From contig NC_087251.1 of the NCBI RefSeq assembly GCF_037042905.1, forward strand, positions 23,684,001-23,748,000: a DNA stretch of 64,000 bases. The letters are read 5' to 3'. Under the pieces are notes generated by a model. The model did not search any database. It was not told the origin of the DNA and worked only from the letters and a program-made list of their open reading frames with translations. The position numbers were made by a program, and so were the translations under genes. Origin of the DNA: Lytechinus pictus. Lineage: Eukaryota. Of the stretch, positions 4,001 through 31,161 are shown piece after piece (positions within the stretch are counted from its first letter, which is position 1; every line of letters begins with the position of its first letter).

Positions 4001-4918
4001 AGATGTCAGGAAACTAGCACTCGTTAGACCTTTATCCATATAATCGTGGTAAGTGCATAATTTCTGTTTTCACAATTCATTTGGAGAAATATTTAGACCA
4101 TAAATCACCCTAGTCCCGCGAGTATGGTAAAATACACTGTAAGCCCCTGGGCTCCCGCCCGCTGCGCGGGCGGGAGCTCCCTGGGTTAGATATTTATCTG
4201 AATTATGGCCATGGCATGGGTGCATTACATGCCGCCGTGCACAGGAAAATCGCAGGCACGGCGCATGCAACACTTGCATGGGATTATATATTGTAAATAA
4301 AATAACATTATTCTACGAAACTTACAAGTTACAGTACAGTGATTATGATTGAATCAAATTTCTGCTAATAAAATAATAATATTCCTCGAATAGATGCGAG
4401 CGCTGATTATTCTTCTCGTTGACATGGTTGACAAACTATGGAGCTTACTCGCCGCTTCCAAATTTTTTGTCTAAACTTAAAGAGGGTGCGTGATTTACAT
4501 TCATATCAAAGATACTAGTACAAGGCCAAGGAAAGACTAGGCACTAACATTATTTTACATGTATGATGTAAATCGATGCAAAGCGTTACACGAAGTCGGC
4601 AAAGTGTCTAATCTTTTTATTGTATAGATCTGTACGTTGGTGGAACGTTTGTTGACAAACAAACATAGGCTCGCACTGCTGGCTTCATTCAAGGCACATA
4701 GAATTTTCAATTTTTTTGTTTCAATTGTCATCACTTTGAATGTTTTCCAAAAAGTGTTATCGTCAGCACTAATAATCTAAAAGTAGGTTTTTTAAGTTAT
4801 TGCATTTATTGGTGTCTATATTTTACCAAACGATCATAGGAATTGCGCATACAATGAATTTTGACATAATTATAAAATACCGACAACCTGAATTAAGGTT
4901 GTGAATTGTATTAGCGTA

Positions 4919-7411: not shown

Positions 7412-9385
7412 ATGATTCTGATGACAAGTAAAGAACTGATCATCCAGCTTCAGATATTTCTTGCCTTTATTCTGATAATGGATGTCATCAAGCTGTCGTG
7501 TGGAGTACCTCAGTCTCCAGGTAAGCTTGTCAAAATAAGAAAAGTTAGTTTTGCTGTGTTTGTGGGGATAGAAAATTGCGTGTGTAAATCGAGATTTAGC
7601 AGGGATGAAGACAAGGCTGGTATTTCTTGAGTAAAGAAGCCGCTGGAGAAAACCTCCCAAAGAGTTTGTACACTTGATTCGGCCTGAGGCCAAGGCCTTG
7701 ACTACATCCCTGAAATGTAGTTTTTAAAGGGCAAGTTCACCCCATCAACAAGTTTATTTTTTATCCTTTACTGACTTCAATCTTTGAAACAGAATGAAAC
7801 TACCGGTAAGTCATATGAATATTCATAATATACAAGAGAAAATGTGTATATGGATTCCATAACTTGCATGCCAACAGTGTTATGCACATAGCTGTTTTGT
7901 AAAACCATTCACTGTATGTACTTTGTTTTCTGTAGAGTTAAATAAACAAAAAATGATCTTGAAGAAAAGGGATATACGAGTTACACTTATTAAATTTTTT
8001 GTGTTGAACAGAGAAATTCAGTATGCCCATTTTAAAAAGTTAAAAATTCCTCTCACTCTCTGGTTTTATTTCACCATTTTTGTTTTGTCACAGCTTGGAA
8101 GAAGATCTCCAGTAAAATCTTGCTGACAGGTAGTTATCAGGAAATACTGCTGCCTCACTCAGATGCAGCTGTTTGGCTAGATTCCACTACAGGATGGGTA
8201 TGGCTATTTGGAGGACAAACTGCACAGAATAACAAGACTTCTACTCTTGATCAGCTCTGGAAATTAGATCTTCAAACAATGAACTGGATCCTGATCCACA
8301 AGGATGGAAAGAAATGGCCTTCAAAGAGACATCAGGCAGTTTTGTGTTCGAGAGGAAGAGCCCTTGTTCTTGCTGGGGGGATACTGACATCTGGCTCCTG
8401 GAGCCCGGATGTGTGGAAGTATGACACTGACACAGGGATATGGGAGATTGAAGTTGGGTATGAACATTTGCTAAGTAATGTAACAAGATTCTGGTGCTCT
8501 GGTCAGGACCTGTATGGCTTCGTGCAGGATGAGTCTTATACCACATTGTTACAGTATCACTGGGACCATAAGAGCTGGACAAAGATTCCGACCAGAGTTG
8601 GCACAAAGAAAGCTATGTCAGAACTCGAACCAGACCTAAGGAACATTTCTATCTATCCACTGTGGCCTTCAGAAAGAGGGTTTATAATTCTTTATGCACC
8701 TGCTGATGGTAGTAAGTTCAAATTCAACTCTGATAGATTAGAGCTGATAGGCTCACAATGTATTCTTTGGTTACTTGATAAGGATATTCAATGGACACCA
8801 CTGCTCTCTGACTGCAACACCGATGGTAAATGCCTGACATCATTATCACCTCATGAAAAGACACAGATTCTACATGTTGATGTGCCACCATGCCGTACAC
8901 ATGCTGGTACATGGATTGACAGTGATGGTAATGTATGGATGCATGGCGGTAGGTCTGACACAGAACTACTGCGAGACACATGGATGTATGACCTAAAATC
9001 CAAATCATGGACACAGCTTAAAAGTCCTTGCCTCACAGGAACATGTCAGGAACCTGATGTTTACATAGATCCTATTACTTGGACTTATAATGACACACTC
9101 TTTCTCTTTGATGGTCAACATGTCCAGACATCCTCAAACACGACATCTCTTGCAGGTATCTGGACATTGAACATATCAAACTTTCTGCAACATTCCATGC
9201 TAGCTGTGCCTCCTATTGGTGTATTTCTTATCTCTTTGAGCGTTACCTTCATTGTCTCGTTGGGAACTTGCGTGATCATAATCCTTGTGAAGTGTTCGTC
9301 AACAACAGCTCCAAGGATCAGGCCACCTGTAAGGACTTATGGCAAAGTGCAGTATTCACCTGTCAGCTCTACTGATGGGCCGTAA
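7412..9385 (+). CDS. Type-I transmembrane Kelch-repeat (beta-propeller) protein, about 466 aa, 2 coding exons (7412-7520, 8094-9385)
   Basis: Exon 7412-7520 encodes a signal peptide (MILMTSKELIIQLQIFLAFILIMDVIKLSCG) and ends CCAG|GTAAGC in phase 1. Acceptor CACAG|8094 is in frame with the 421-aa ORF. Kelch motifs: VWLFGG..LWKLD..W, LVLAGG..VWKYD..W, VWMHGG..TWMYD..W, LFLFDG..IWTLN. Six N-glycosylation sequons, a C-terminal TM helix (IGVFLISLSVTFIVSLGTCVIIILV) and a short tail containing YSPV. Confidence 0.85.
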
Positions 9386-13738: not shown

Positions 13739-15510
13739 TTAGACTCTTGTCACAATTAACACTATTCACAGCATTCACCTATACAGGGCTCGTCGCACTT
13801 GTAGCTTTACAAAAGTTGAAGGTATTCACGAACATATTTTTCTAATTTCCTTTTGTTCTTTGTTTTTTTTTAAATAACATTATGTGAAGTTGTCTATAGA
13901 AATCCCAATCTCATTTCAAAGGCATCATCACTGATCAACACATTTTGGAGAAAAGGATCCCTAGTAAATTAACAAAATTTTACAGAATCAATGACAGAGA
14001 TACTGCAATTTCAAGAGTATTTCTTCCAAACAAGACATATCCTGGTCTTTGTGTAGCATAAATACCTGTACTACTTGGGATCTTCCTGAATGTATATCTA
14101 GAGTATTCTCCCAAATATATATCAATGAAACTGCATTTAAGTTGGTCATATTTCATCACACATCCTCACCACAGTCCAAGAGAAATGAAAGTATGAATAG
14201 CATCAAATTTACAGTTCAATTATTTATTAAATCAGGAAAGAGTCTTGTGTCTCCTGAGATAGCATGGTAGATGGTTTGAGATAATCAACAAGTCTACATC
14301 TAACACAACATTCCTTACCATACACTTTGCATATTAAAACTATGTACAAAATTAAGAAACATATTTTAGTAATTGTCCAATGCTTTTCTTCCAATGAAGG
14401 CAAGAATAAGAGTCAAGTAGTATTGACAGCATGAACACAATATATATTTACATATCATTGAATTGGATCGCTTATTCCTCTTACAGAATCATTTGCTTTT
14501 TACCATCCAATTATTCCATGTGTTGTGTCTATCATCAATATATCAATTACCTTTTTTTCAGAAGAGGGGATATCATAAAACATTCAGTTTGAATTATCGC
14601 TTGAATATCTAAAAAGCATGGCCAACAAAGTATGAATACCATATTAATTAAACAAAAAACATCCTACATCATTTAAAAATTGTTATCTTGATAACTGGGT
14701 GAGTCCAGTGAAATAAACTGGATTTGACCGCGGAACAGAGTACTTCTCAGGTAAATCAGTATAAGGTTTTCATATGATTTCAGACTCATGATTTTAATTA
14801 ATTAGGTTTCCAGGGGGGGGGGGGTGGTCAACAATTACAACAAAAGTTGTTTCTTTCTTAAAATGCTAAATCCAAAAATGCGCCTAATGTTGGGTTGAAG
14901 CCTTTAAGGTATTTCCAAAGCAATGTCTATATTTACAAACATGTCCTTGAGCAGGAATGTATCTCTTCACTGTAAAACATAAAATTCATTTCATAATCAT
15001 CAGTAAACATATAATCCGTAAGACAGAACACTTCACTGACATATAAAAAGATTTAGGTGAAATCCAAATAGTAAGCTAATACAAAATCTAACATCTATAA
15101 AACAACAGGTCAAAAATACAAACAAAATTACAATCTTTTCCATTTGATTACTATTTACATACTCCCACATATCAACGATAAGAATCTGTTACCAACTGTA
15201 TTAACTTACCACATTAACATGTTTGTTTTATTTACCTTTTAAGCAGTATTTACATCATATAATCAAAGCTAAAGGTTATTTTATTTTGCTGGGTAGGGAT
15301 CATACAAGGAACAGATATTCATGATCTTACTTAATACCACTGACAGGGTCATCAAATATGCAAGCATTTTAACAATTCAAAAATTAAACAATTCTTGAGG
15401 TCACCATACTCACAAAGAAAGCCTGAACTAATCAAAGAGCCAAGATGTATTGTATTTCGGATAATGATCTCAACATTGTTCTTCAACTTTCTCTTTGCAT
15501 CTGTACAGGC

Positions 15511-18500
15511 CTACTGGCTTGACCCAGATCCTCCATAGTTGCCATAGTTGCTGTAGTACTGGGCGTACTGTTGGGCATACTGAGGGTTCTGCTGGTAGTA
15601 TTGTTGATACTGCTGTTGATAGTTAGCATACTGTTGCTGCGTCTGTTGCTGAGACGGTTGGTTCTGTTGATACCCCTGGTTGTACGAGCTTTGAGTGCCC
15701 TGGGTGTAGCTGCTGGTGTTGCTGCTATTCCCATACCCCGAGGTGTTGCTGTAGTTTGATGAAGAACCATAGCCTTGGTTTGAGCTGTAGTTACTTGATC
15801 CACTACCACTCCCGTAACTTGACTGCTGATTGTAATTTGACTGCTTGTTCTGTTGGTAGTTGGACTGAGAGGAAGAAATAAAAAATTTGAGATTAAAATT
15901 CACCTCAATGAATAAATGCAGAGATTTGGTCAATTTGAAAACCCTACTTTCAAACCTAGTCCATTTTTAGTTCATCTATATTTATAATGAGATCCGACTT
16001 CTTTCAATGCGCATGAATTAAAACATTTCTTTTACAGCCAATTAACTTCATGGTTTTGTGCGACAATTCTCATTCGATATCTTTGAAACTGGAATAACAA
16101 TCTCCATCAATCTGATGCAAGTCAAATTTATCCTTCTTAATAATATTTTGAACAATGTAGTTGAATCATAAAAAGCAAACACCTAAAAGCAGTTTCAAAT
16201 GGAAAATCAGTATTGACCTTAGACAGTCAGCTGCCCCTGGGTAACAATTTCAACTACAGCACTACATTATTATCTTGCTACATAGCTATATCCATAAAAA
16301 CAAGAACAATTTCATACGGCTGTTCCTACAAAATGAATAATTCCCAGGATGTGAGTCAAATACCTGGTTTCCGTATTTGTTGTATGAGCCTTGGTTCTGA
16401 CGATTGCCATAGCTTCCACCACTGCTCTGGTTTCCATACCCACCAGAGCTGGAGTTTCTGTTGTAGTTACTACTGCCACTACCGTAGTTGCTGCTTCCAC
16501 GATTACTGTAGTTGCTGCTACCACCACCGTATCCACCACTGTTGTATCCTCCTCCGCCACGTCCACCACCGTAGCCACCACTTCCGCCACCGCGACCACC
16601 ACCATATCCACTGCCACCACGGTTCCAGCCTGAACAAAATGATATGAAGCAGATAGTAATTATTTCAAATAATTGTTATTTAACATAACAATGAACATGT
16701 TGGGAATTTACTCTGGTTGAATATTCAACCTTGGGAGATGTCAAGAGTTTTTACAAAGTTCTAGCATTTACCAGTATAAGAATTTTTGAGGAAAGAAACT
16801 GAGATCTTATTCTCGATGATTAATGTGCCGAGGAAATTAACAATGCACTGAGCTATCTGTATATATTTACGAAGTAAATGAAAGAATGGTGGCATACCTC
16901 CTTCACGATAGCCTCCTCGGTATCCACCTCCTCCACCATAACCTCCACGACGGTCACCGTGATCATATCCACCAGAACGATAGCCACCACCGCCGCCATA
17001 GCCTCCTCTTCGGTCATCATGACGGCCGTATCCACCACGGTCATATCCTCCTCTGAAGTCTCGACCACCACGACGGTCAAAGCGAGGTTTGAGTCCTCCA
17101 GCGTCCTTGCCTTCTTTGCGGTAGCGCTCTACCAGGGGCTTGCACTCCTCCTCACTCAGCTCAACATACTCCACTTCATCAAAGAGCACACCCTTCTCGG
17201 GGAGCTCAAAGTTGGCTAAATAAATCACAATGTGGGTTAGCATGAAAGAATAAAAATAATTAGCACATGGAAATGTTCCTTCATGAAGCAGTGTGGCCCA
17301 TACTTTACACTTACTCTACAGTTGCCTACATTAAGACTTAACAGGCTAATTCTACAGAGTAAGACGATGGGTGATTACATTTGTTTGAGCCATTGCTGGC
17401 TATTGATCCCTACCTTTCATCTCATTCACAGCATGGTCCGGGACGTCCTTGCCTTCTTCTTTAGTGCGTTTTTCCACTCGCTTCTTAAACTCTTCATCAG
17501 AGGGAACTAATACGATTGCTTTGGTGCTGAAACCCTCAAAAGGGCGCATTTTTCTTCTTCTTGCGGAGGGATACACATTTGTCTGACAGCAGCATTGAAG
17601 TAGGAGAGAATAATAGTGATTATTTCTGATTCCATACTTGGGGCTATTAAAGCCGCATCATTCAATTCTCTGTAATGATAAGTCCATACATGTTACTAAA
17701 ATGGTCATAACAAGAGTTTGAAGTAATATACATACCCCATCTGAAAGAAAGAAGTGGTTAGTTGTGCTTGCCTTGTGCATAAAACTGAAATTTAAAGCCA
17801 ACAGAATCAGAAAATCCAGTGCATCAAATCTTCAAATCTACCTCTGACCCAGAGATGCCATTGGTGATACTAACATAATATATTATGTCTCAGTCCGGCT
17901 ACACTACACAATTCACACATATTGATACCTTTAACATATTGATACCTTTAACATTCTTAAACAGTACACAATAATTCAAGTATCAAAGGAAATCAAAATG
18001 AATGTACTTAAAGTTTTCAAAGAGAAAAAGAGACAAATACACTTCTAATTTAATATGCATGCAAAATTACCCACAGCTGATCCATCAACAAAGATAATGC
18101 CTTTGATATTCAAAGTGACAATGGTTGGTAGTTCTATTACTCTTAGATGACTATCTATTTGAAGAGTTTGAACACCATTGCAATCCAAACCTCTATCCCA
18201 AACCAAATCGTGATTTCGTGCAATAAAGCAAAACATTGAGCGACATATGTATCTCTGGTAAGTCATGAATAAGTTTTCTCCAGAATTACCATTAAATTAA
18301 AATGAAATATTGGGCACTTTGCTACAGATTCCTTTTTATTCAAGTTTTAAAATCTATTTTCATCTATACTGCATTCGCAGCTGACTTTAAAAAAAAAAGA
18401 GCCTAACTTGATCAAATGAAAATGTATTGTTCTCCTTTAGCAAAACTGTTACTAGCCATCATATCACAAAATGATTTAAATCATGACAAGAAATTTCTCC

Positions 18501-24500: not shown

Positions 24501-27500
24501 TGAGAGAAATGAGACTGAGGGGCAGTTTCACAGAATTAGACTAAACATCATGCAAAAGCACCAATGAATACACCAGTATTTAACATGTAATCCCCATTAA
24601 AAGGACACAAATCTTTCCAGTCAGCCCAATATGCTGTATTATGAAGACTTACCTCACAATCCTTCTTGGTTGCAGGAGATTTAGGCCCACGTACAGAGTC
24701 TTCAGCAGGTAGCTTGCCAATGAAAGAGAACTCTTCCTTCAATGGAAAATAAGGCTCCTCCTAAATGACGGAAATGATTTAAAATAATACTATTATTCAG
24801 AAATCTTACCTCGAACCAGCAATGATTAAACTTTATTCAGTAAAGAAAAATAATTCACAATCAAAGAAAATAATTACTAAATATAGTCCTCATCCTAAGT
24901 TCAATCATTCAATGTATCGCATACCAGGGATGAAAAAACATGCAACATGCAGGTTCATGTATTTTTTTTGTCCATATGTTTATTCACTTGCTACACAATT
25001 CTCAGATGGAAACACTAGTTCAGTCTCTTCATGTTATGAGTGCTCAATCAGAAGCAGAACTGGCAGTGTGAGTATCATCATAGAAATTGTCCTCTGAAAA
25101 GGTAAGATATGATTATAAAAACAAAAATGTACTTTATCCTACCTTCTGGCCAAAGTTGAGCTCCACTGAGATATTCTTGACCATGACATGAGGGAACAAG
25201 GCTTTGCCTTCTAGGTCTTCTTCAATGGTGAAGGCAACACCAAGGTCATTGCCATTCTTGGTGTATGAGATTGTTGGCTTCTCTCCTTCAAAGTCCTGCA
25301 AATGTAAAATCGAATAGAGTTGAATATTGGCAATACGCCTATGCTTACATTCAATGTCAAAAGTGTCAATGAGAGTCACATTAATGGGTGAACCACATTA
25401 ATGTGGTCTTGTGCAGAATAATCCCATTTTTAATGAGTATATTGTACTAAGTTTCTGAACACTAAATTCTCAGATCATAACACTAGTTCAATCTCTTCAT
25501 GATTTTGTGTGCTCAATCAGAAGCAGAACTGGCAGTGTAAATATCATCACTGAACAACATTTTCCAATGTTATAAATCACAAGACAAACATTTCTAGTTC
25601 TTCAAAACAGTCTCAAATAACAATTTTGTGTCAAAAACAAACAAACAACTTACCACATATGCACCAATAACATCTCCCACACCAAACTTCTCTCCATAGT
25701 TCTCAAACTTGCATTTGACCGATGCCTTTCCTGTTCCTCCATACCCATAAGAAAAGTCTTCCTCTCCTGCAGAAACATTAACAACTAAAGTCAGTTATTT
25801 ATATCAATTATAACTTCTATGCATAACATTCAATGCAAACTTGCTGGTCACCAGTCAATTGAAGTGAGGAAAGTAGGTATGCAGAATGAAATTCTTGGCA
25901 ATTTGTTCACTTAATTTTAACTACAGCTAGTCAGAATATCTTGAGGCAGACCAATAATCTGGGACCCAATACCACCAACGACTGACTTTGAATTGATTGG
26001 AAGTCGTTGGGAAGCCACTTGGGTACCTTTACGCCATAAGATTTGTTTACATCATAATTCTCAGATAGCTACACTAGTTTAGTTTCTTCATGATTGTGAG
26101 TGCTCAATCAGAAGCAGAACTGGCAGTGTGTGTTTCATCACAGAATTGCAAACATTCAACATTCGCATGCAAAAAAGAGCGACATTCTGTCCTGTTGAAG
26201 ATGTCAAAATAAATTTGGATAGAGTAATAATGAAAATGAACTAACCCAACTGAAGAGAAGATGCATCAATGGACCATCCTACACGGACAACATGTTTGTT
26301 GGTCTCTTCAGGAGGTAGATGGCGCACATCAGCTTGGGACTCCAGCTGCAACAGAGATGAATACATACTTTTATATACACACAATGCCTTCATCGTTCTT
26401 AATTCATAGAATATAAATGCTAATTGACCATCCTCAGAAAATAAACACTAGTCCATCCTCTTCATGATTGTGAGTGCTCATTCAGAAGCAGAACTGGCAG
26501 TGTAGATTTCATCACTGAATTTCTAAAACATGCTATCATGCAATCTTCAAATTTAGGACTTTTCAGAAATAATCTATAAAGAAAAAAATTGACAGATTTC
26601 ATATACATTTTAAAAGAGGGTATTATTCTTGCTATGGGAATACATACCTTGCATTCATATCCGATTTTCCCTTTATTCACACCGTGTGTAGCCTTGACTC
26701 CACCCCACATGTATGCGAACCCTTCCATGCTGAGGGGACATGCATTATAGCCATCTTTGCCAATTTTTAGATTCAAGTCAGAAAGGTCTATAGAGAAAAA
26801 AGAAATATATTCATAGAAGAAAAGAATAGTCACAATTTTGTTCCTTATCACATCCCATGTTGTAATTTGACCAAAATTGTTTAATAAAAACATACTACTG
26901 TCATTCAATCAGACCAAATCTGATTTCCAAGTTGCTTGGAAAGTCCCCTTGGTCATATCTAATATGCCATTACATGATTATAAGAATCTGATAAGATCAT
27001 TACATCACAATTCTCAGATAGCTACACTAGTTCAGTTTCTTCATGGTTGTAAGTGCTCAATCAGAAGCAGAACTGGCAGTGTATGTTTCATCACAGAATT
27101 ACAAACGTTAACATGTGAAAAAATAGTGACAAATATTTACGCCAGAATGAAATATGCAGAGTGATGCTAATTCAAATTTACTTGACTAAAAAGATAGATC
27201 ACCATTATCTAACAAGGTCAATGCCCTTCCTAAATGTATGCACGACCCAGAGTTTGAAGCTAGATTACAGGGATGCATCTTTTCTTCATTTAGGTTATCC
27301 ATGAAACAGTTGACTTGTAGCAATAAGTTAATCTGAAAAAATGCCCCTGGTAACCACCTACAAAAGGTGGAAGAACAATAACACTTCACCTATTCCCATG
27401 AATGCATGGAATAAATCAGAAGCAAAACTTAGATTTCACATTCCATAGGATACATACGGTACATGTATTTAGCAGTCATCCAAATCCCAATGAACTTACA

Positions 27501-30500
27501 TTTGCTGAGCACACACTGTGTATCTGGTATATCATCATCTTCTTCCATAACCACAGGAGGGGGTGTTCTGAAGGTAAGAAGGATAAAGTTGGTTGCAATT
27601 GTATATTACACTAAATGCAGTATCTTTGTGAACTCATAACACAAATCATTTTTAGACATTGGTACACATACGCTAAACTTGCTTCCTGCTTTGAAATTCA
27701 TGCATTTTCACTTCCTGCATTGAATGGGGAATTCCCCATTCCATAACATTGTGGATTAAGCAAGCTGGTACTCGTCTGAAATCGAGCAAAAGCAGTTACC
27801 AAAATTTTCAACAAATGATTCTGAAATGCAGACCTTCATTTTTGAGGAGCGCGATCGCGCCGGCGCTCCTACCGCGCTCCTTAAAAAAAATAAGGATAGC
27901 AAAAAATCGCGCTCCTAAAAAAAAAATTTTTTTAATGAAGAAAAAAAATTGCTAAAATTTCACATCTTTAAATCTATGAAATGGTCTTCTTTTTTCCATA
28001 ATTCCTTGAAATTACTTTGATTTAGTTGAAAACTATCAGAAAAATTAAGAATATTCATCTCTTTCCCGACTCTGATTTTAATTTAAACTCGGTAAATATT
28101 TGCAGTCCCATATGTAGATTTTCATGGCAGCACCATGAAAGTCTACATGTGGGACTACAATATTTACTGAGGTAAGTTCAAATCAGAGTCGGGAAAGAGG
28201 TGAATATTCTTCATTTTTCTGATAGTTTTCAACTAAATCAAAGTAATTTCAAGGTATTATGGAAAAAAGAAGGCCATTTCATGGATTTAAAGATGTAAAA
28301 TGTAAAATTTTAGCAATTTTTTTTTTCAATTTTTTTTTTTTTTCAATTTTTTTTTTGCAGTAGCGCATACGACATCTTGTAAACGTATTGACGTGACCCA
28401 GGCCTAGTTTCACCACAGATTAATTAATAGCTAACACAGCTACTGCATATATACAATGTTAAGAAAAATCTACAATTTATCATACATGTATTGTAATGAA
28501 TTGATTTGAGCTCCTCACGGAGAGCGATTCTGAGGAGCTCAATTGAGCTCCTCAGAAAAATAAGGAGAGCGATTTATTGAGCTCCATGAAATTATAAACG
28601 TGAAGGACTGTAAATGATTAGGGAACTATGTATGATGCCAAACTAAGGCCGAATTACATGTTCATCAAAAGAAAAACAAAATCAATTAAAACCTGTAAGT
28701 TAAAGTTTTTTCTAAATTCATTGTAATTAGAATGGTAATTTAAGAGAAAGAGTATCACATCAAATTTCTTTCGAAAAAGATGGAAGATTGCATTTTTGTT
28801 CAAGTCTACTTCTCAGGCACAATACACCCATTTGAGCATGTGGGTACAAAGCCACACTTTTTGGATGGTTTTATGTACATCCTTGTCAAGTACAAGCAGA
28901 ACCAATTGAACTGTTGATATCCCCCCCCCCCCTCCTTTTTTTTTTTACAGTTGAACAATTTAAAATACCCAAATAAAGATAAAAATCAGCCAAATCTGCA
29001 CTTAAAAGTAAATTTTTCATGCAAGAGGCCATCTTGGAATCCCACATCTAACCATCCAATGTCAAACTTCTTTGTTTGGGGGGTGGGTACAACACAAAAA
29101 ATATATAAATATACATATTTTGTTACCATAAATTTAACTGGGATGAAACACAGTAAGATTTTATTTATATTTGTAAATAGAACTTGAAAGAACCAGATGT
29201 TTTTCTTTCACAGCAAACTTCATTTACAGAAACAAAATTTAATTTTGATTGTCCTCAACCCCCCCCCCCCCCCCATCTGAGGATGTAACACCATCCAAAG
29301 TATGTGACTTTGTCCCACATGCTCAAATTGGTGTGTTGTATATCTTTCTTGTAATGATAATGAAAATGTAAAAAATAAAACAATGCCCTATGGCAAAAAT
29401 GAAAATCCACTGAAAAAATTACAAATGTGTAACAGTATAATGCCTCAGAAAGTAACACTAGTTCAGTTTCTTCATAAATTTGAGTGCTCAATCAGAAGCA
29501 GAACTGGCAGTGTAAGAATCATCACAGGACATGTTAAGTAACTTGTTTACAAGTCTTTATTACTCGCACCCACCTTCTCCTGGGAGATCTATCTCTGCCT
29601 CCAAATCGGCGATCACGGTTCCTGTTCTCATAGTCGCGTTTCCTTTCTTTATCCTTGTCACCTTCTTCTTTCTTGTCCCCTATAAATTACAAAAATTCAA
29701 ACATTTATGGTACTTTATTACACTTGACACAAACACAATTGCAAATGTGTAAGAAAATAGAAATCTTGAATACACTTTTTTTGTCATAGAAAAGGAAAAT
29801 GGGAAACATGCTATTCTCAGAGCGTGTATTTTCCTTACCATCCCCAGACTGCTCTTTATTTTCACCTTCCTTCTCTTCTGTTTGTGGTTGGGCTTCTTGC
29901 TCCATGCTTTCTGGTGGCTGTTCAACTTGCCCCTGCTCATCCGTTGCTTCTGGTTCAGCTTCTGTAACTTGAGGCATGGCATCCTCCTCTTGCACCATAG
30001 CTTCTTCTTGTGGTTCTGGCTGGACTTCTGCTTCCGGTTCCTCCATAGCTGGAGGAATTTCCAAGTCTGCCAAGAGTTGGTCATCTCCACCCTCTTCACC
30101 TGAAATGAGAGAAAATGTTCTGGTCAAAATACAAAGTGATTAAAGGTTTTTTGCACTGGTATGATGGGCCCCTTCAACTTTTTACACCTTCTGCTTGCCA
30201 GATGTTTACGCCGCCATCTTGTTTCCTATTGTTCTTCGCCAACGTTACGGTCGCGTGCGTTGCGTAACATTGGCGAAGAACAATAGGAAACAAGATTTTC
30301 ACAATATTTTTCTCATTTTTTTGATGAATTCTTGTTTAAAAATAACGAGAGCGTAGAAATGTCGGAAATGAAGTTTTATCCCATGTAGGCCCTACATGAT
30401 TTAGGGCTAACCTTTTAGGCCTAGATATTTTAGAAGTAGAAATCTCGGGGATGAAAGTTTCAGGTTTTGGGGTCCTTCGTGTAGGTGAATGAGAAGACCT

Positions 30501-31161
30501 GGCTTCATTGAGACTGAGAGTAAGCCTACGTTAGTAAATGATTTTTACTCTCAAGAAGCCGCCTGGCTACTCTGGCCTAGAATTATACTCCATTATTTAT
30601 TTCATAACATGCATCATGCATTGCATGCATCGTTGCAAGCCAAATATCCGAATGAATTTAATGGGAATTATTTAATGTAATTAATGGGAATGTAATTAAT
30701 AATGGGAACTTCAAGTTCAACTTCACTTTATTTTACTTAGTCTTGGATAGGCCTAATTCATAAATTGGAGTGAAGATGGCCTATGATGGACAAGACTTTT
30801 CTTGGCCATGCATGCCTTGGCTTTTTTGGGCTGGCCGAATTCACGAACCTGCTTGCAAGAGATCATCTGCTTCTTGGCTGGTTCCATCCTGATCCCCTGA
30901 AAATCCAAACTCATCGCCAAATCCTTGCTCTGCTTCTGGTAGTGCTTCTTGTGCTAGTTCTACAACATCTTCGTCAAAATTGTCATCTTCGTCTGCTTCC
31001 GCGGGTTCGTTCTCATTCCCCACTTCCTCGGCTTCGGCAAGCAAAGCATTCTCAAGTCGATCAACAAGGACAGCTTTCACTCCCTTTGAATCGAGTCCAC
31101 GCGCTTGCAGTTCCGCGCGAAGCTCCGCGACCTTCAACTTGGATGGTTCAATCTCACTCAT
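15511..31161 (-). CDS. HNRNPUL1: hnRNP U family protein (hnRNP U-like 1 / SAF-A), 15 exons, about 906 aa: SAP - acidic linker - SPRY - P-loop NTPase - RGG - Q/Y/N/S-rich tail
   Basis: GT-AG exons with consistent phases: 31161-30849, 30099-29839, 29679-29574, 27567-27500, 26787-26648, 26345-26246, 25766-25654, 25295-25143, 24760-24653, 20283-20161, 19852-19724, 17582-17414, 17215-16898, 16629-16364, 15864-15511 (2721 nt). SAP motif [28 protein letters not shown]; SPRY motifs [16 protein letters not shown] and VRVGWS; Walker [10 protein letters not shown]; [15 protein letters not shown]...RNYILDQTNVY...KMRPFEGF...[15 protein letters not shown] as in hnRNP UL1. Confidence 0.96.
19268..19306. repeat. 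(AATTC)n pentanucleotide microsatellite
   Basis: About 8 tandem AATTC units in intron 11 of the hnRNP U gene. Confidence 0.9.
21638..23408 (-). CDS. Intron-embedded BEN-domain module (3 exons: 23408-23258, 22870-22800, 22549-21638; 377 aa), probable alternative 3' end of the hnRNP U gene
   Basis: Acceptor TTCCTTTCCCGTTTCTAG|AAT (phase 0) and donor TAC|GTAAGG (phase 1). Acceptor TTTTAATATACAG|GA and donor AAG|GTGTGT (phase 0). Acceptor TATTTTGTAG|ATG opens the 303-aa ORF. The joined frame is open: [52 protein letters not shown].. then ..[34 protein letters not shown] (BEN-like). Minus-strand AATAAA at 21374-21379. Confidence 0.72.
24995..25090 (-). ncRNA. SNORD38: C/D box snoRNA, SNORD38/snR61-like (intron 8 copy)
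   Basis: Minus strand: ACAATT-TCT-ATGATGA (C box)...GCCAGTTCTGCTT-CTGA (guide plus D')...ATGAAGA (C')...CTGA (D)-G-AATTGT terminal stem. The guide is complementary to 28S rRNA AAGCAGAACUGGC. Confidence 0.88.
25467..25554 (-). ncRNA. SNORD38: C/D box snoRNA, SNORD38/snR61-like (intron 7 copy)
   Basis: GTGATGA C box, identical guide GCCAGTTCTGCTT-CTGA, D box CTGA, short TTC/GAA terminal stem. Confidence 0.87.
26056..26147 (-). ncRNA. SNORD38: C/D box snoRNA, SNORD38/snR61-like (intron 6 copy)
   Basis: AATTC-T-GTGATGA...GCCAGTTCTGCTT-CTGA...CTGA-GAATT with terminal stem. Confidence 0.88.
26430..26520 (-). ncRNA. SNORD38: C/D box snoRNA, SNORD38/snR61-like (intron 5 copy)
   Basis: GTGATGA C box, identical guide plus CTGA D' box, CTGA D box, ATTC/GGAT terminal stem with a G-U pair. 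Confidence 0.85.
27009..27100 (-). ncRNA. SNORD38: C/D box snoRNA, SNORD38/snR61-like (intron 4 copy)
   Basis: AATTC-T-GTGATGA...GCCAGTTCTGCTT-CTGA...CTGA-GAATT; closest in sequence to the intron 6 copy. Confidence 0.88.
27829..28610. mobile_element. Non-autonomous DNA transposon containing a long internal palindrome (arms about 27940-28125 and 28132-28325)
   Basis: Termini CAGACCTTCA...TGAAGGACTG. Internal arms of about 190 bp, e.g. CTCTTTCCCGACTCTGATTT / AAATCAGAGTCGGGAAAGAG and TTACTTTGATTTAGTTGAAAACTATCAGAAAAAT / ATTTTTCTGATAGTTTTCAACTAAATCAAAGTAA. Confidence 0.75.
29443..29528 (-). ncRNA. SNORD38: C/D box snoRNA, SNORD38/snR61-like (intron 3 copy)
   Basis: CCT-GTGATGA...GCCAGTTCTGCTT-CTGA...ATGAAGA...CTGA-GG; same architecture as the other five copies. 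Confidence 0.86.
30216..30296 (-). other. 81-nt hairpin with a 34-bp stem in hnRNP U intron 1, overlapping a YY1-type motif
   Basis: ATCTTGTTTCCTATTGTTCTTCGCCAACGTTACG - 13-nt loop - CGTAACATTGGCGAAGAACAATAGGAAACAAGAT; CGCCGCCATCTTG at 30209-30221. Confidence 0.7.

Follow-up and report, generated by a model that had tools for sequence, protein, structure and literature searches.

Isoform clusters with one small nucleolar RNA (snoRNA) per intron are known in multi-isoform hosts of Drosophila and in vertebrate hosts of the GAS5/SNHG type, where near-identical isoforms occupy consecutive introns and reflect intragenic duplication. Among box C/D snoRNAs, the human SNORD38 copies are hosted in RPS8 and target 28S-A1858 (PMC6466398), and the related yeast snR61 belongs to a set of 13 yeast snoRNAs in which extra base-pairing near the target is conserved (van Nues et al. 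2011, PMC3116282). These additional pairing elements lie mainly in the D′-C′ linker or in the second guide region, and for snR61 they were suggested to help open the structure at the target (PMC3116282). Here we analysed a 64,000-nt stretch of the sea urchin Lytechinus pictus genome (NC_087251.1, 23,684,001-23,748,000; hereafter the window, whose positions are used for the coordinates below), in which introns 3-8 of a heterogeneous nuclear ribonucleoprotein U (hnRNP U)-like gene very probably carry six paralogous genes for functional box C/D snoRNAs belonging to the SNORD38/snR61 family. Unlike the isoform clusters mentioned above, this one resides in a protein-coding gene for a chromatin/RNA-binding protein, and its multi-copy association with the host spans two phyla. 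Literature searches found no description of an association between the SNORD38 family and an hnRNP U-like host, and the units are apparently unannotated snoRNA genes.

Reading of the minus strand between window positions 24800 and 29700 revealed six units of 80-90 nt each (Table 1). All six carried a C box RUGAUGA near the 5′ end (GUGAUGA in five copies and AUGAUGA in one), CUGA both as D′ and as D, AUGAAGA as C′, and a terminal stem of 3-7 bp whose sequence differed among the copies (for example AUUC/GAAU and CC/GG), with a span of ~81 nt from box C to box D. Together with the GT-AG exon model, this reading confirmed the arrangement given in a preliminary description of the stretch, namely that introns 3-8 hold one unit apiece in the sense orientation, with C, D′, C′ and D boxes and a terminal stem. 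Alignment of the six copies gave a mean column identity of 79%, with invariant blocks (UGAUGA, the 22-nt ACACUGCCAGUUCUGCUUCUGA, UGAGCAC, AUGAAGA, ACUAGUGU and UCUGAG) separated by segments that varied. The 13-nt guide, singled out earlier as the invariant part, was indeed unchanged in all six copies; the invariant part, however, turned out to be larger than these 13 nt, comprising the whole of ACACUGCCAGUUCUGCUUCUGA and the further blocks.

The identity of the host was supported by SAP (Pfam, E = 7e-14), SPRY and AAA_33 domains encoded by the minus-strand exons. Exons 1-8 formed an open frame of 418 codons in the GT-AG exon model, and exon 8 matched residues 368-418 of an 832-aa protein that NCBI names ‘heterogeneous nuclear ribonucleoprotein U-like isoform X3 [Lytechinus pictus]’ at 100% identity. 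The domains and the protein match bore out an hnRNP U-like gene as the host, differing from human RPS8. The 980-aa isoform X1 has the same exons, and exons 1-8 are common to both listed protein isoforms; therefore, both must splice the introns holding the units. The earlier proposal that both isoforms free the RNAs thus holds as far as splicing is concerned, and both would be expected to release them.

A scan of the whole window against Rfam at gathering thresholds gave no match. In a permissive scan (4.9 kb, 4227 families), all six units aligned over their full length to RF00476, which holds yeast snR61 and plant Z1 and Z11, belongs to clan CL00051 together with SNORD38, and was the best Rfam family for each of them, at 29.2-38.0 bits against a gathering score of 45 (E = 0.003-0.17). 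The guide plus D′ of the urchin RNAs (CAGUUCUGCUUCUGA) and the UGAAGA of C′ were identical to the RF00476 consensus. The printed alignments showed 8-9 additional nucleotides (‘gagcacuc’) in the D′-C′ linker of the urchin RNA, and the sub-threshold scores were due mainly to this linker insert and to the divergent second half. Human SNORD38A and SNORD38B (U38A/B, RF00212) share with the urchin units the D′-adjacent guide CCAGUUCUGC... aimed at the A of GC[A]G in the large-subunit (LSU) ribosomal RNA (rRNA), the intronic location sense to the host, and at least two paralogs per host gene. Differences are the host and the copy number (two in RPS8, six in the hnRNP U-like gene) and the greater length of the urchin RNA (~81 nt box to box), which has the ~9-nt D′-C′ linker insert.

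For complementarity searches we used a 16.4-kb ribosomal DNA (rDNA) unit of L. pictus, located via its 5.8S sequence. Next to the D′ CUGA, the guide GCCAGUUCUGCUU forms a 13-bp duplex with 28S AAGCAGGACUGGC, made up of 12 Watson-Crick pairs and one G·U; the wobble involves guide nucleotide 7 counted from D′ and falls two positions 3′ of the target. This was the single complementary site in the rDNA unit and coincided with the homologous 28S site, in agreement with the SNORD38/snR61 site identity suggested earlier. Counting upstream from D′, guide nucleotide 5 is opposite the A of GC[A]G, so that the previously invoked D+5 rule holds as D′+5 on AAGCAGGACUGGC. The predicted target A lies at position 1740 of the extracted rDNA sequence and position 1146 of the Rfam LSU model, and its sequence context suggests that it is the equivalent of human 28S-A1858. 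Extension of the guide duplex into ACACU was considered and rejected, as the rRNA continues with GCUG, a mismatch.

In one respect the preliminary description was incorrect. It had the guide complementary to AAGCAGAACUGGC in the 28S rRNA of the species and took a 28S lacking AAGCAGAACUGGC as evidence against the snoRNA assignment. The L. pictus 28S reads AAGCAGGACUGGC, not AAGCAGAACUGGC, and is literally without the expected sequence, but the duplex survives with one G·U pair. The 17-mer containing AAGCAGGACUGGC was the same in all 52 rDNA copies found with the pattern. The 17-mer extending AAGCAGAACUGGC had 0 matches in the L. pictus genome, and the 13-mer AAGCAGAACUGGC itself had 12 non-snoRNA genome matches, none of them in rDNA, which represent chance matches. 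Alignment to the Rfam eukaryotic LSU model located the target in the 3′ strand of a conserved hairpin (extracted rDNA 1713-1760), in which one pair is C-G in L. pictus where the Rfam consensus has U-A. This compensated change indicated that the A-to-G substitution is real rather than an assembly error and that it left the otherwise universal guide with a G·U pair. At a distance from the target pair, guide duplexes tolerate G·U.

The six copies were the sole BLAST matches to a 101-nt query in the 812-Mb L. pictus genome, and a covariance model built from them (R1) scored them at 110-123 bits, with no other genome match above 31 bits. Recurrence of a similar sequence within a short distance could in principle reflect a dispersed repeat or transposon fragment that resembles a C/D snoRNA by chance; this reading was rejected because both searches returned only six copies, all in the hnRNP U-like gene, on one strand and one per intron, and it became virtually untenable in view of flanks that are dissimilar save for one pair and of orthologous copies in other classes and another phylum (see below). 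Dispersal through the genome in both orientations, pointed out earlier as what a transposon would show, was thus not observed. The cores of the copies were 82-96% identical, while their 60-nt flanks were 45-65% identical, equal to the random intronic level (54 ± 5). Conserved cores within flanks at the random level are therefore indicative of old duplicates under purifying selection, as was proposed from the drift of the spacers. The exception was the pair formed by copies 2 and 4 (introns 4 and 6), with a core identity of 96% and a 5′ flank identity of 72%, suggestive of one more recent duplication or conversion.

Apart from this locus, the C/D model gave five weak same-strand matches within ~19 kb of the L. 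pictus genome at C10:32337561-32356550. Two of these, on the minus strand (extracted-locus positions 4135-4208 and 8409-8482), were weak SNORD60-like Rfam matches (~30 bits versus a gathering score of 42). The C10 region probably represents a further multi-copy cluster of C/D snoRNAs in L. pictus.

A comparison of host gene and copy number in related species, proposed in the preliminary description, was carried out on orthologous genes retrieved by protein look-up, with introns numbered via the conserved SPRY exon series. The same host contained the array in four other species. The sea urchin Diadema antillarum has four intact sense copies in introns 5, 8, 9 and 10 (87-104 bits with the L. pictus-based model), which kept UGAGCAC and shared ACUAGUGU, plus one decayed copy. 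The crinoid Antedon mediterranea has five nearly identical sense copies in introns 2, 4, 7, 8 and 9, of which four reached 47.3 bits, above the RF00476 gathering score of 45. Among hemichordates, Glandiceps talaboti has six sense copies (introns 5, 6, 7, 8, 10 and 11) and Saccoglossus kowalevskii five (two N-terminal introns and introns 6, 8 and 10), all of 62-66 nt, with AUGA as D′ and terminal stems such as ACAGAA/UUCUGU and UUGGUAA/UUACCAA. Taken over all species with the array, the terminal stems measure 3-8 bp. No copies were found in the orthologous genes of the starfish Asterias amurensis and the coral Acropora digitifera, and that of the brachiopod Lingula anatina had no SNORD38-like copy, carrying U54-like snoRNAs instead; these three absences may reflect loss, relocation or paralogy. 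None of the 26 copies from the five species with the array departs from the common C box, CCAGUUCUGC, D′ UGA or D box.

Copies clustered by species in a tree, with weak resolution among the echinoid copies, and their identity was 86-99% within species versus 35-62% between classes, which points to turnover or gene conversion. The presence of the array in a crinoid and two hemichordates argued for a state ancestral to Ambulacraria and not for a recent sea-urchin amplification; several copies in this host are not peculiar to sea urchins. Judging from these sequences, the multi-copy, one-per-intron array dates to the common ancestor of echinoderms and hemichordates, followed by turnover or homogenisation within lineages.

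The tie to one host gene has persisted across Ambulacraria, and each of the five species that have the array carries a copy in intron 8. This would also be expected if the main selected role of the units were exerted in cis, the intronic small nucleolar ribonucleoproteins (snoRNPs) or their precursors controlling how the hnRNP U-like pre-mRNA is spliced or which isoform it yields, and rRNA guiding being secondary; intronic snoRNAs can affect host splicing (PMC10324135). However, conservation between phyla concerns the rRNA guide together with the boxes, and not sequence complementary to host introns; the occupied introns otherwise differ among species, and the orthologous gene of Asterias has none. 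We therefore regard a predominantly cis role as very unlikely and favour the assignment of the units as rRNA guides.

In the L. pictus copies, the D′-C′ linker contains UGAGCAC, extended to UUGAGCACUC in most of them, which is complementary to 28S GAGUGCUCAG. This rRNA segment stops 16 nt short of the guide site, immediately before the hairpin on its 5′ side, and the linker and guide duplexes have a collinear orientation. The linker/28S duplex has a free energy of −18.7 kcal/mol, a value reached by 2 of 2000 shuffled linkers and in 4 of 1635 overlapping rDNA windows, the latter being approximately the number of windows that contain the GAGUGCUCAG site. Because of this complementarity and of the snR61 precedent (PMC3116282), we are inclined, by a narrow preference, to read the echinoid-specific linker insert as an extra base-pairing element. 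The Antedon copies are without the insert; their second guide region contains UUACCAAA, as does the Rfam snR61 consensus, and this sequence is complementary to the conserved UUUGGUAA of the 28S hairpin. The conserved UACCAAA of the RF00476 consensus is found in the crinoid copies and is absent from the echinoids, which carry the linker UGAGCAC.

A second invariant block, ACUAGUGU, was considered as a second methylation guide and rejected, since it had no Watson-Crick complement in the rDNA unit. In addition, the 5-6 nt between ACUAGUGU and box D vary in sequence and length, leaving position 5 not conserved, which argued against a guide at this place. The AGUGU core of ACUAGUGU and the invariant ACACU on the 5′ side of the guide are complementary to each other, and complementary pairs occur at the same two places in Glandiceps (AUAUCAC/GUGAUAU) and in Saccoglossus (CAC/GUG plus flanking pairs). 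These differing yet complementary pairs across lineages support an internal helix, in which ACUAGUGU most likely pairs with ACACU.

Several observations weigh against the assignment of the six units as functional SNORD38/snR61 genes. No L. pictus copy attained the Rfam gathering score, and the vertebrate SNORD38 model RF00212 had no match genome-wide in L. pictus (64 candidates scored), so that the Rfam search suggested in the preliminary description recovered all six units with RF00476, each below gathering, and none with RF00212. The G·U pair two positions 3′ of the target may lower the efficiency of guiding. Accessory pairing, for its part, was supported by complementarity in L. pictus only. 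The optimal distance of a snoRNA from the 3′ splice site in vertebrates is ~70 nt, and the distances from the snoRNA 3′ end to the acceptor in introns 3-8 were 1874, 223, 85, 291, 171 and 238 nt, respectively, placing five of the six copies (171-1874 nt) far from this optimum.

The sub-threshold scores would also suit decaying relics, that is, snoRNA pseudogenes or retrocopies whose expression or assembly has ceased, with the 28S site unmodified or served by another guide; the one clearly decayed copy of Diadema demonstrates that copies can die in place. Against this, every box, the full guide and the terminal stem were kept in all six L. pictus copies while the flanks were randomised, the same elements were invariant in the 26 copies from five species spanning >500 million years, and neither BLAST nor the covariance model found another candidate guide for the 28S site in the L. 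pictus genome. Decay of the whole array is very improbable, and we retain the reading of six functional guide RNA genes.

Under this reading, each spliced intron would be debranched and then trimmed by exonucleases until they meet the snoRNP formed on the C/D kink-turn and the terminal stem, which would free the RNA. The D′-adjacent 13-nt guide would pair with 28S AAGCAGGACUGGC, allowing fibrillarin to 2′-O-methylate the A opposite the fifth guide nucleotide upstream of D′, and the linker UUGAGCACUC would probably dock on 28S GAGUGCUCAG, 16 nt upstream, and help to open the target hairpin. We infer processing, snoRNP assembly, methylation and the six-fold dosage from sequence features. A broader scenario, which we put forward tentatively and hold to be somewhat short of probable, is that the hnRNP U-like gene has kept a multi-copy SNORD38-family array since before the split of echinoderms and hemichordates, made uniform in each lineage by gene conversion or duplication turnover; that the accessory rRNA-docking element moved from the second guide region (the UACCAAA type of yeast and crinoid) to a new D′-C′ linker insert in echinoids; and that the compensated pair in the L. 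pictus hairpin leaves a tolerated G·U.

The analysis would add six apparently unannotated guide RNA genes to a model sea urchin genome and predicts one specific 28S methylation site, and it suggests that real echinoid snoRNAs escape Rfam gathering thresholds. It also provides a clean case in which two phyla share both the host of a snoRNA family and its multi-copy state, the human family being in RPS8, and a natural test case for the tolerance of G·U near the target and for the co-evolution of accessory pairing with variable rRNA flanks. The interest of the locus is modest and lies in the two-phylum conservation of the array, the apparently tolerated G·U and the putatively relocated accessory pairing; the prevailing view of how such systems work is unchanged, and this is a fairly ordinary one-per-intron isoform cluster, of a familiar kind, of SNORD38/snR61 orthologues.

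Table 1. Predicted snoRNA units and host-gene exons in the window (RF00476 and R1 scores in bits; R1 is the covariance model of the six copies)
Feature	Position	Strand	Basis	Internal positions and remarks
snoRNA copy 1, intron 3	29442..29530	-	RF00476 30.6; R1 115; boxes, alignment, exon model	guide antisense 29496-29508; 5′ end ~43 nt downstream of exon 3 donor
snoRNA copy 2, intron 4	27011..27099	-	RF00476 35.1; R1 123.5	guide antisense 27065-27077
snoRNA copy 3, intron 5	26431..26520	-	RF00476 29.2; R1 110; exon model	guide antisense 26486-26498; acceptor 85 nt downstream of 3′ end
snoRNA copy 4, intron 6	26058..26146	-	RF00476 36.8; R1 122.7	guide antisense 26112-26124
snoRNA copy 5, intron 7	25467..25555	-	RF00476 33.0; R1 117.7	guide antisense 25521-25533
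snoRNA copy 6, intron 8	24999..25086	-	RF00476 38.0 (top of six); R1 112.6; direct sequence reading	C box 25075-25081; guide antisense 25052-25064; D′ 25048-25051; putative accessory UGAGCAC 25040-25046
Host coding exon 1	30849..31161	-	Pfam SAP, exon model	start codon, SAP
Host exon 2	29839..30099	-	GT-AG model, open frame	acidic region
Host exon 3	29574..29679	-	exon model	
Host exon 4	27500..27567	-	exon model, SPRY exon series mapping	
Host exon 5	26648..26787	-	exon model, SPRY exon series mapping	SPRY start
Host exon 6	26246..26345	-	exon model, SPRY exon series mapping	
Host exon 7	25654..25766	-	exon model, SPRY exon series mapping	
Host exon 8	25143..25295	-	Pfam SPRY, 100% protein match	SPRY end; 51 codons, residues 368-418
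Host exon 9	24653..24760	-	exon model, exon mapping	residues 419-454; closes intron 8

Within intron 3, window positions 27960-28300 contain a long near-perfect inverted repeat with arms at roughly 27965-28130 and 28135-28300. It gave several weak matches to microRNA models on both strands, makes up much of the 2-kb length of the intron, and looks like a foldback insertion or one of the miniature inverted-repeat transposable element type.

Some further features were seen at the loci of the other species. The decayed copy of Diadema, in intron 9 (extracted locus 17184-17288), kept part of the guide, and its C, D′ and D boxes are destroyed; its position between intact copies (16687 and 17661) with similar flanks suggests a local tandem duplication of ~1 kb. 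In Saccoglossus, the copies at 2068-2157 and 17254-17343 of the extracted locus have the UUGGUAA/UUACCAA terminal stem. The 3′ strand of this stem is identical to the accessory element found in the crinoid and in yeast snR61, and the 5′ strand mimics the 28S hairpin sequence; this resemblance is perhaps a coincidence, because other Saccoglossus copies have different stems. The 17.9-kb Asterias locus has the orthologous exon structure and an annotated protein without the SAP domain, and the absence of copies there may reflect loss, relocation, paralogy or an incomplete gene model. The U54-like C/D snoRNAs of Lingula (RF01277; best score 54.8 bits versus a gathering score of 35) are located at 7683-7745, 8180-8245 and 14137-14199 of that locus. 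They sit in the introns flanking the 51-52-codon SPRY exon, which correspond to introns 7 and 8 of the ambulacrarian SNORD38-type copies, the third U54-like copy being in a partial tandem duplicate of the gene downstream.

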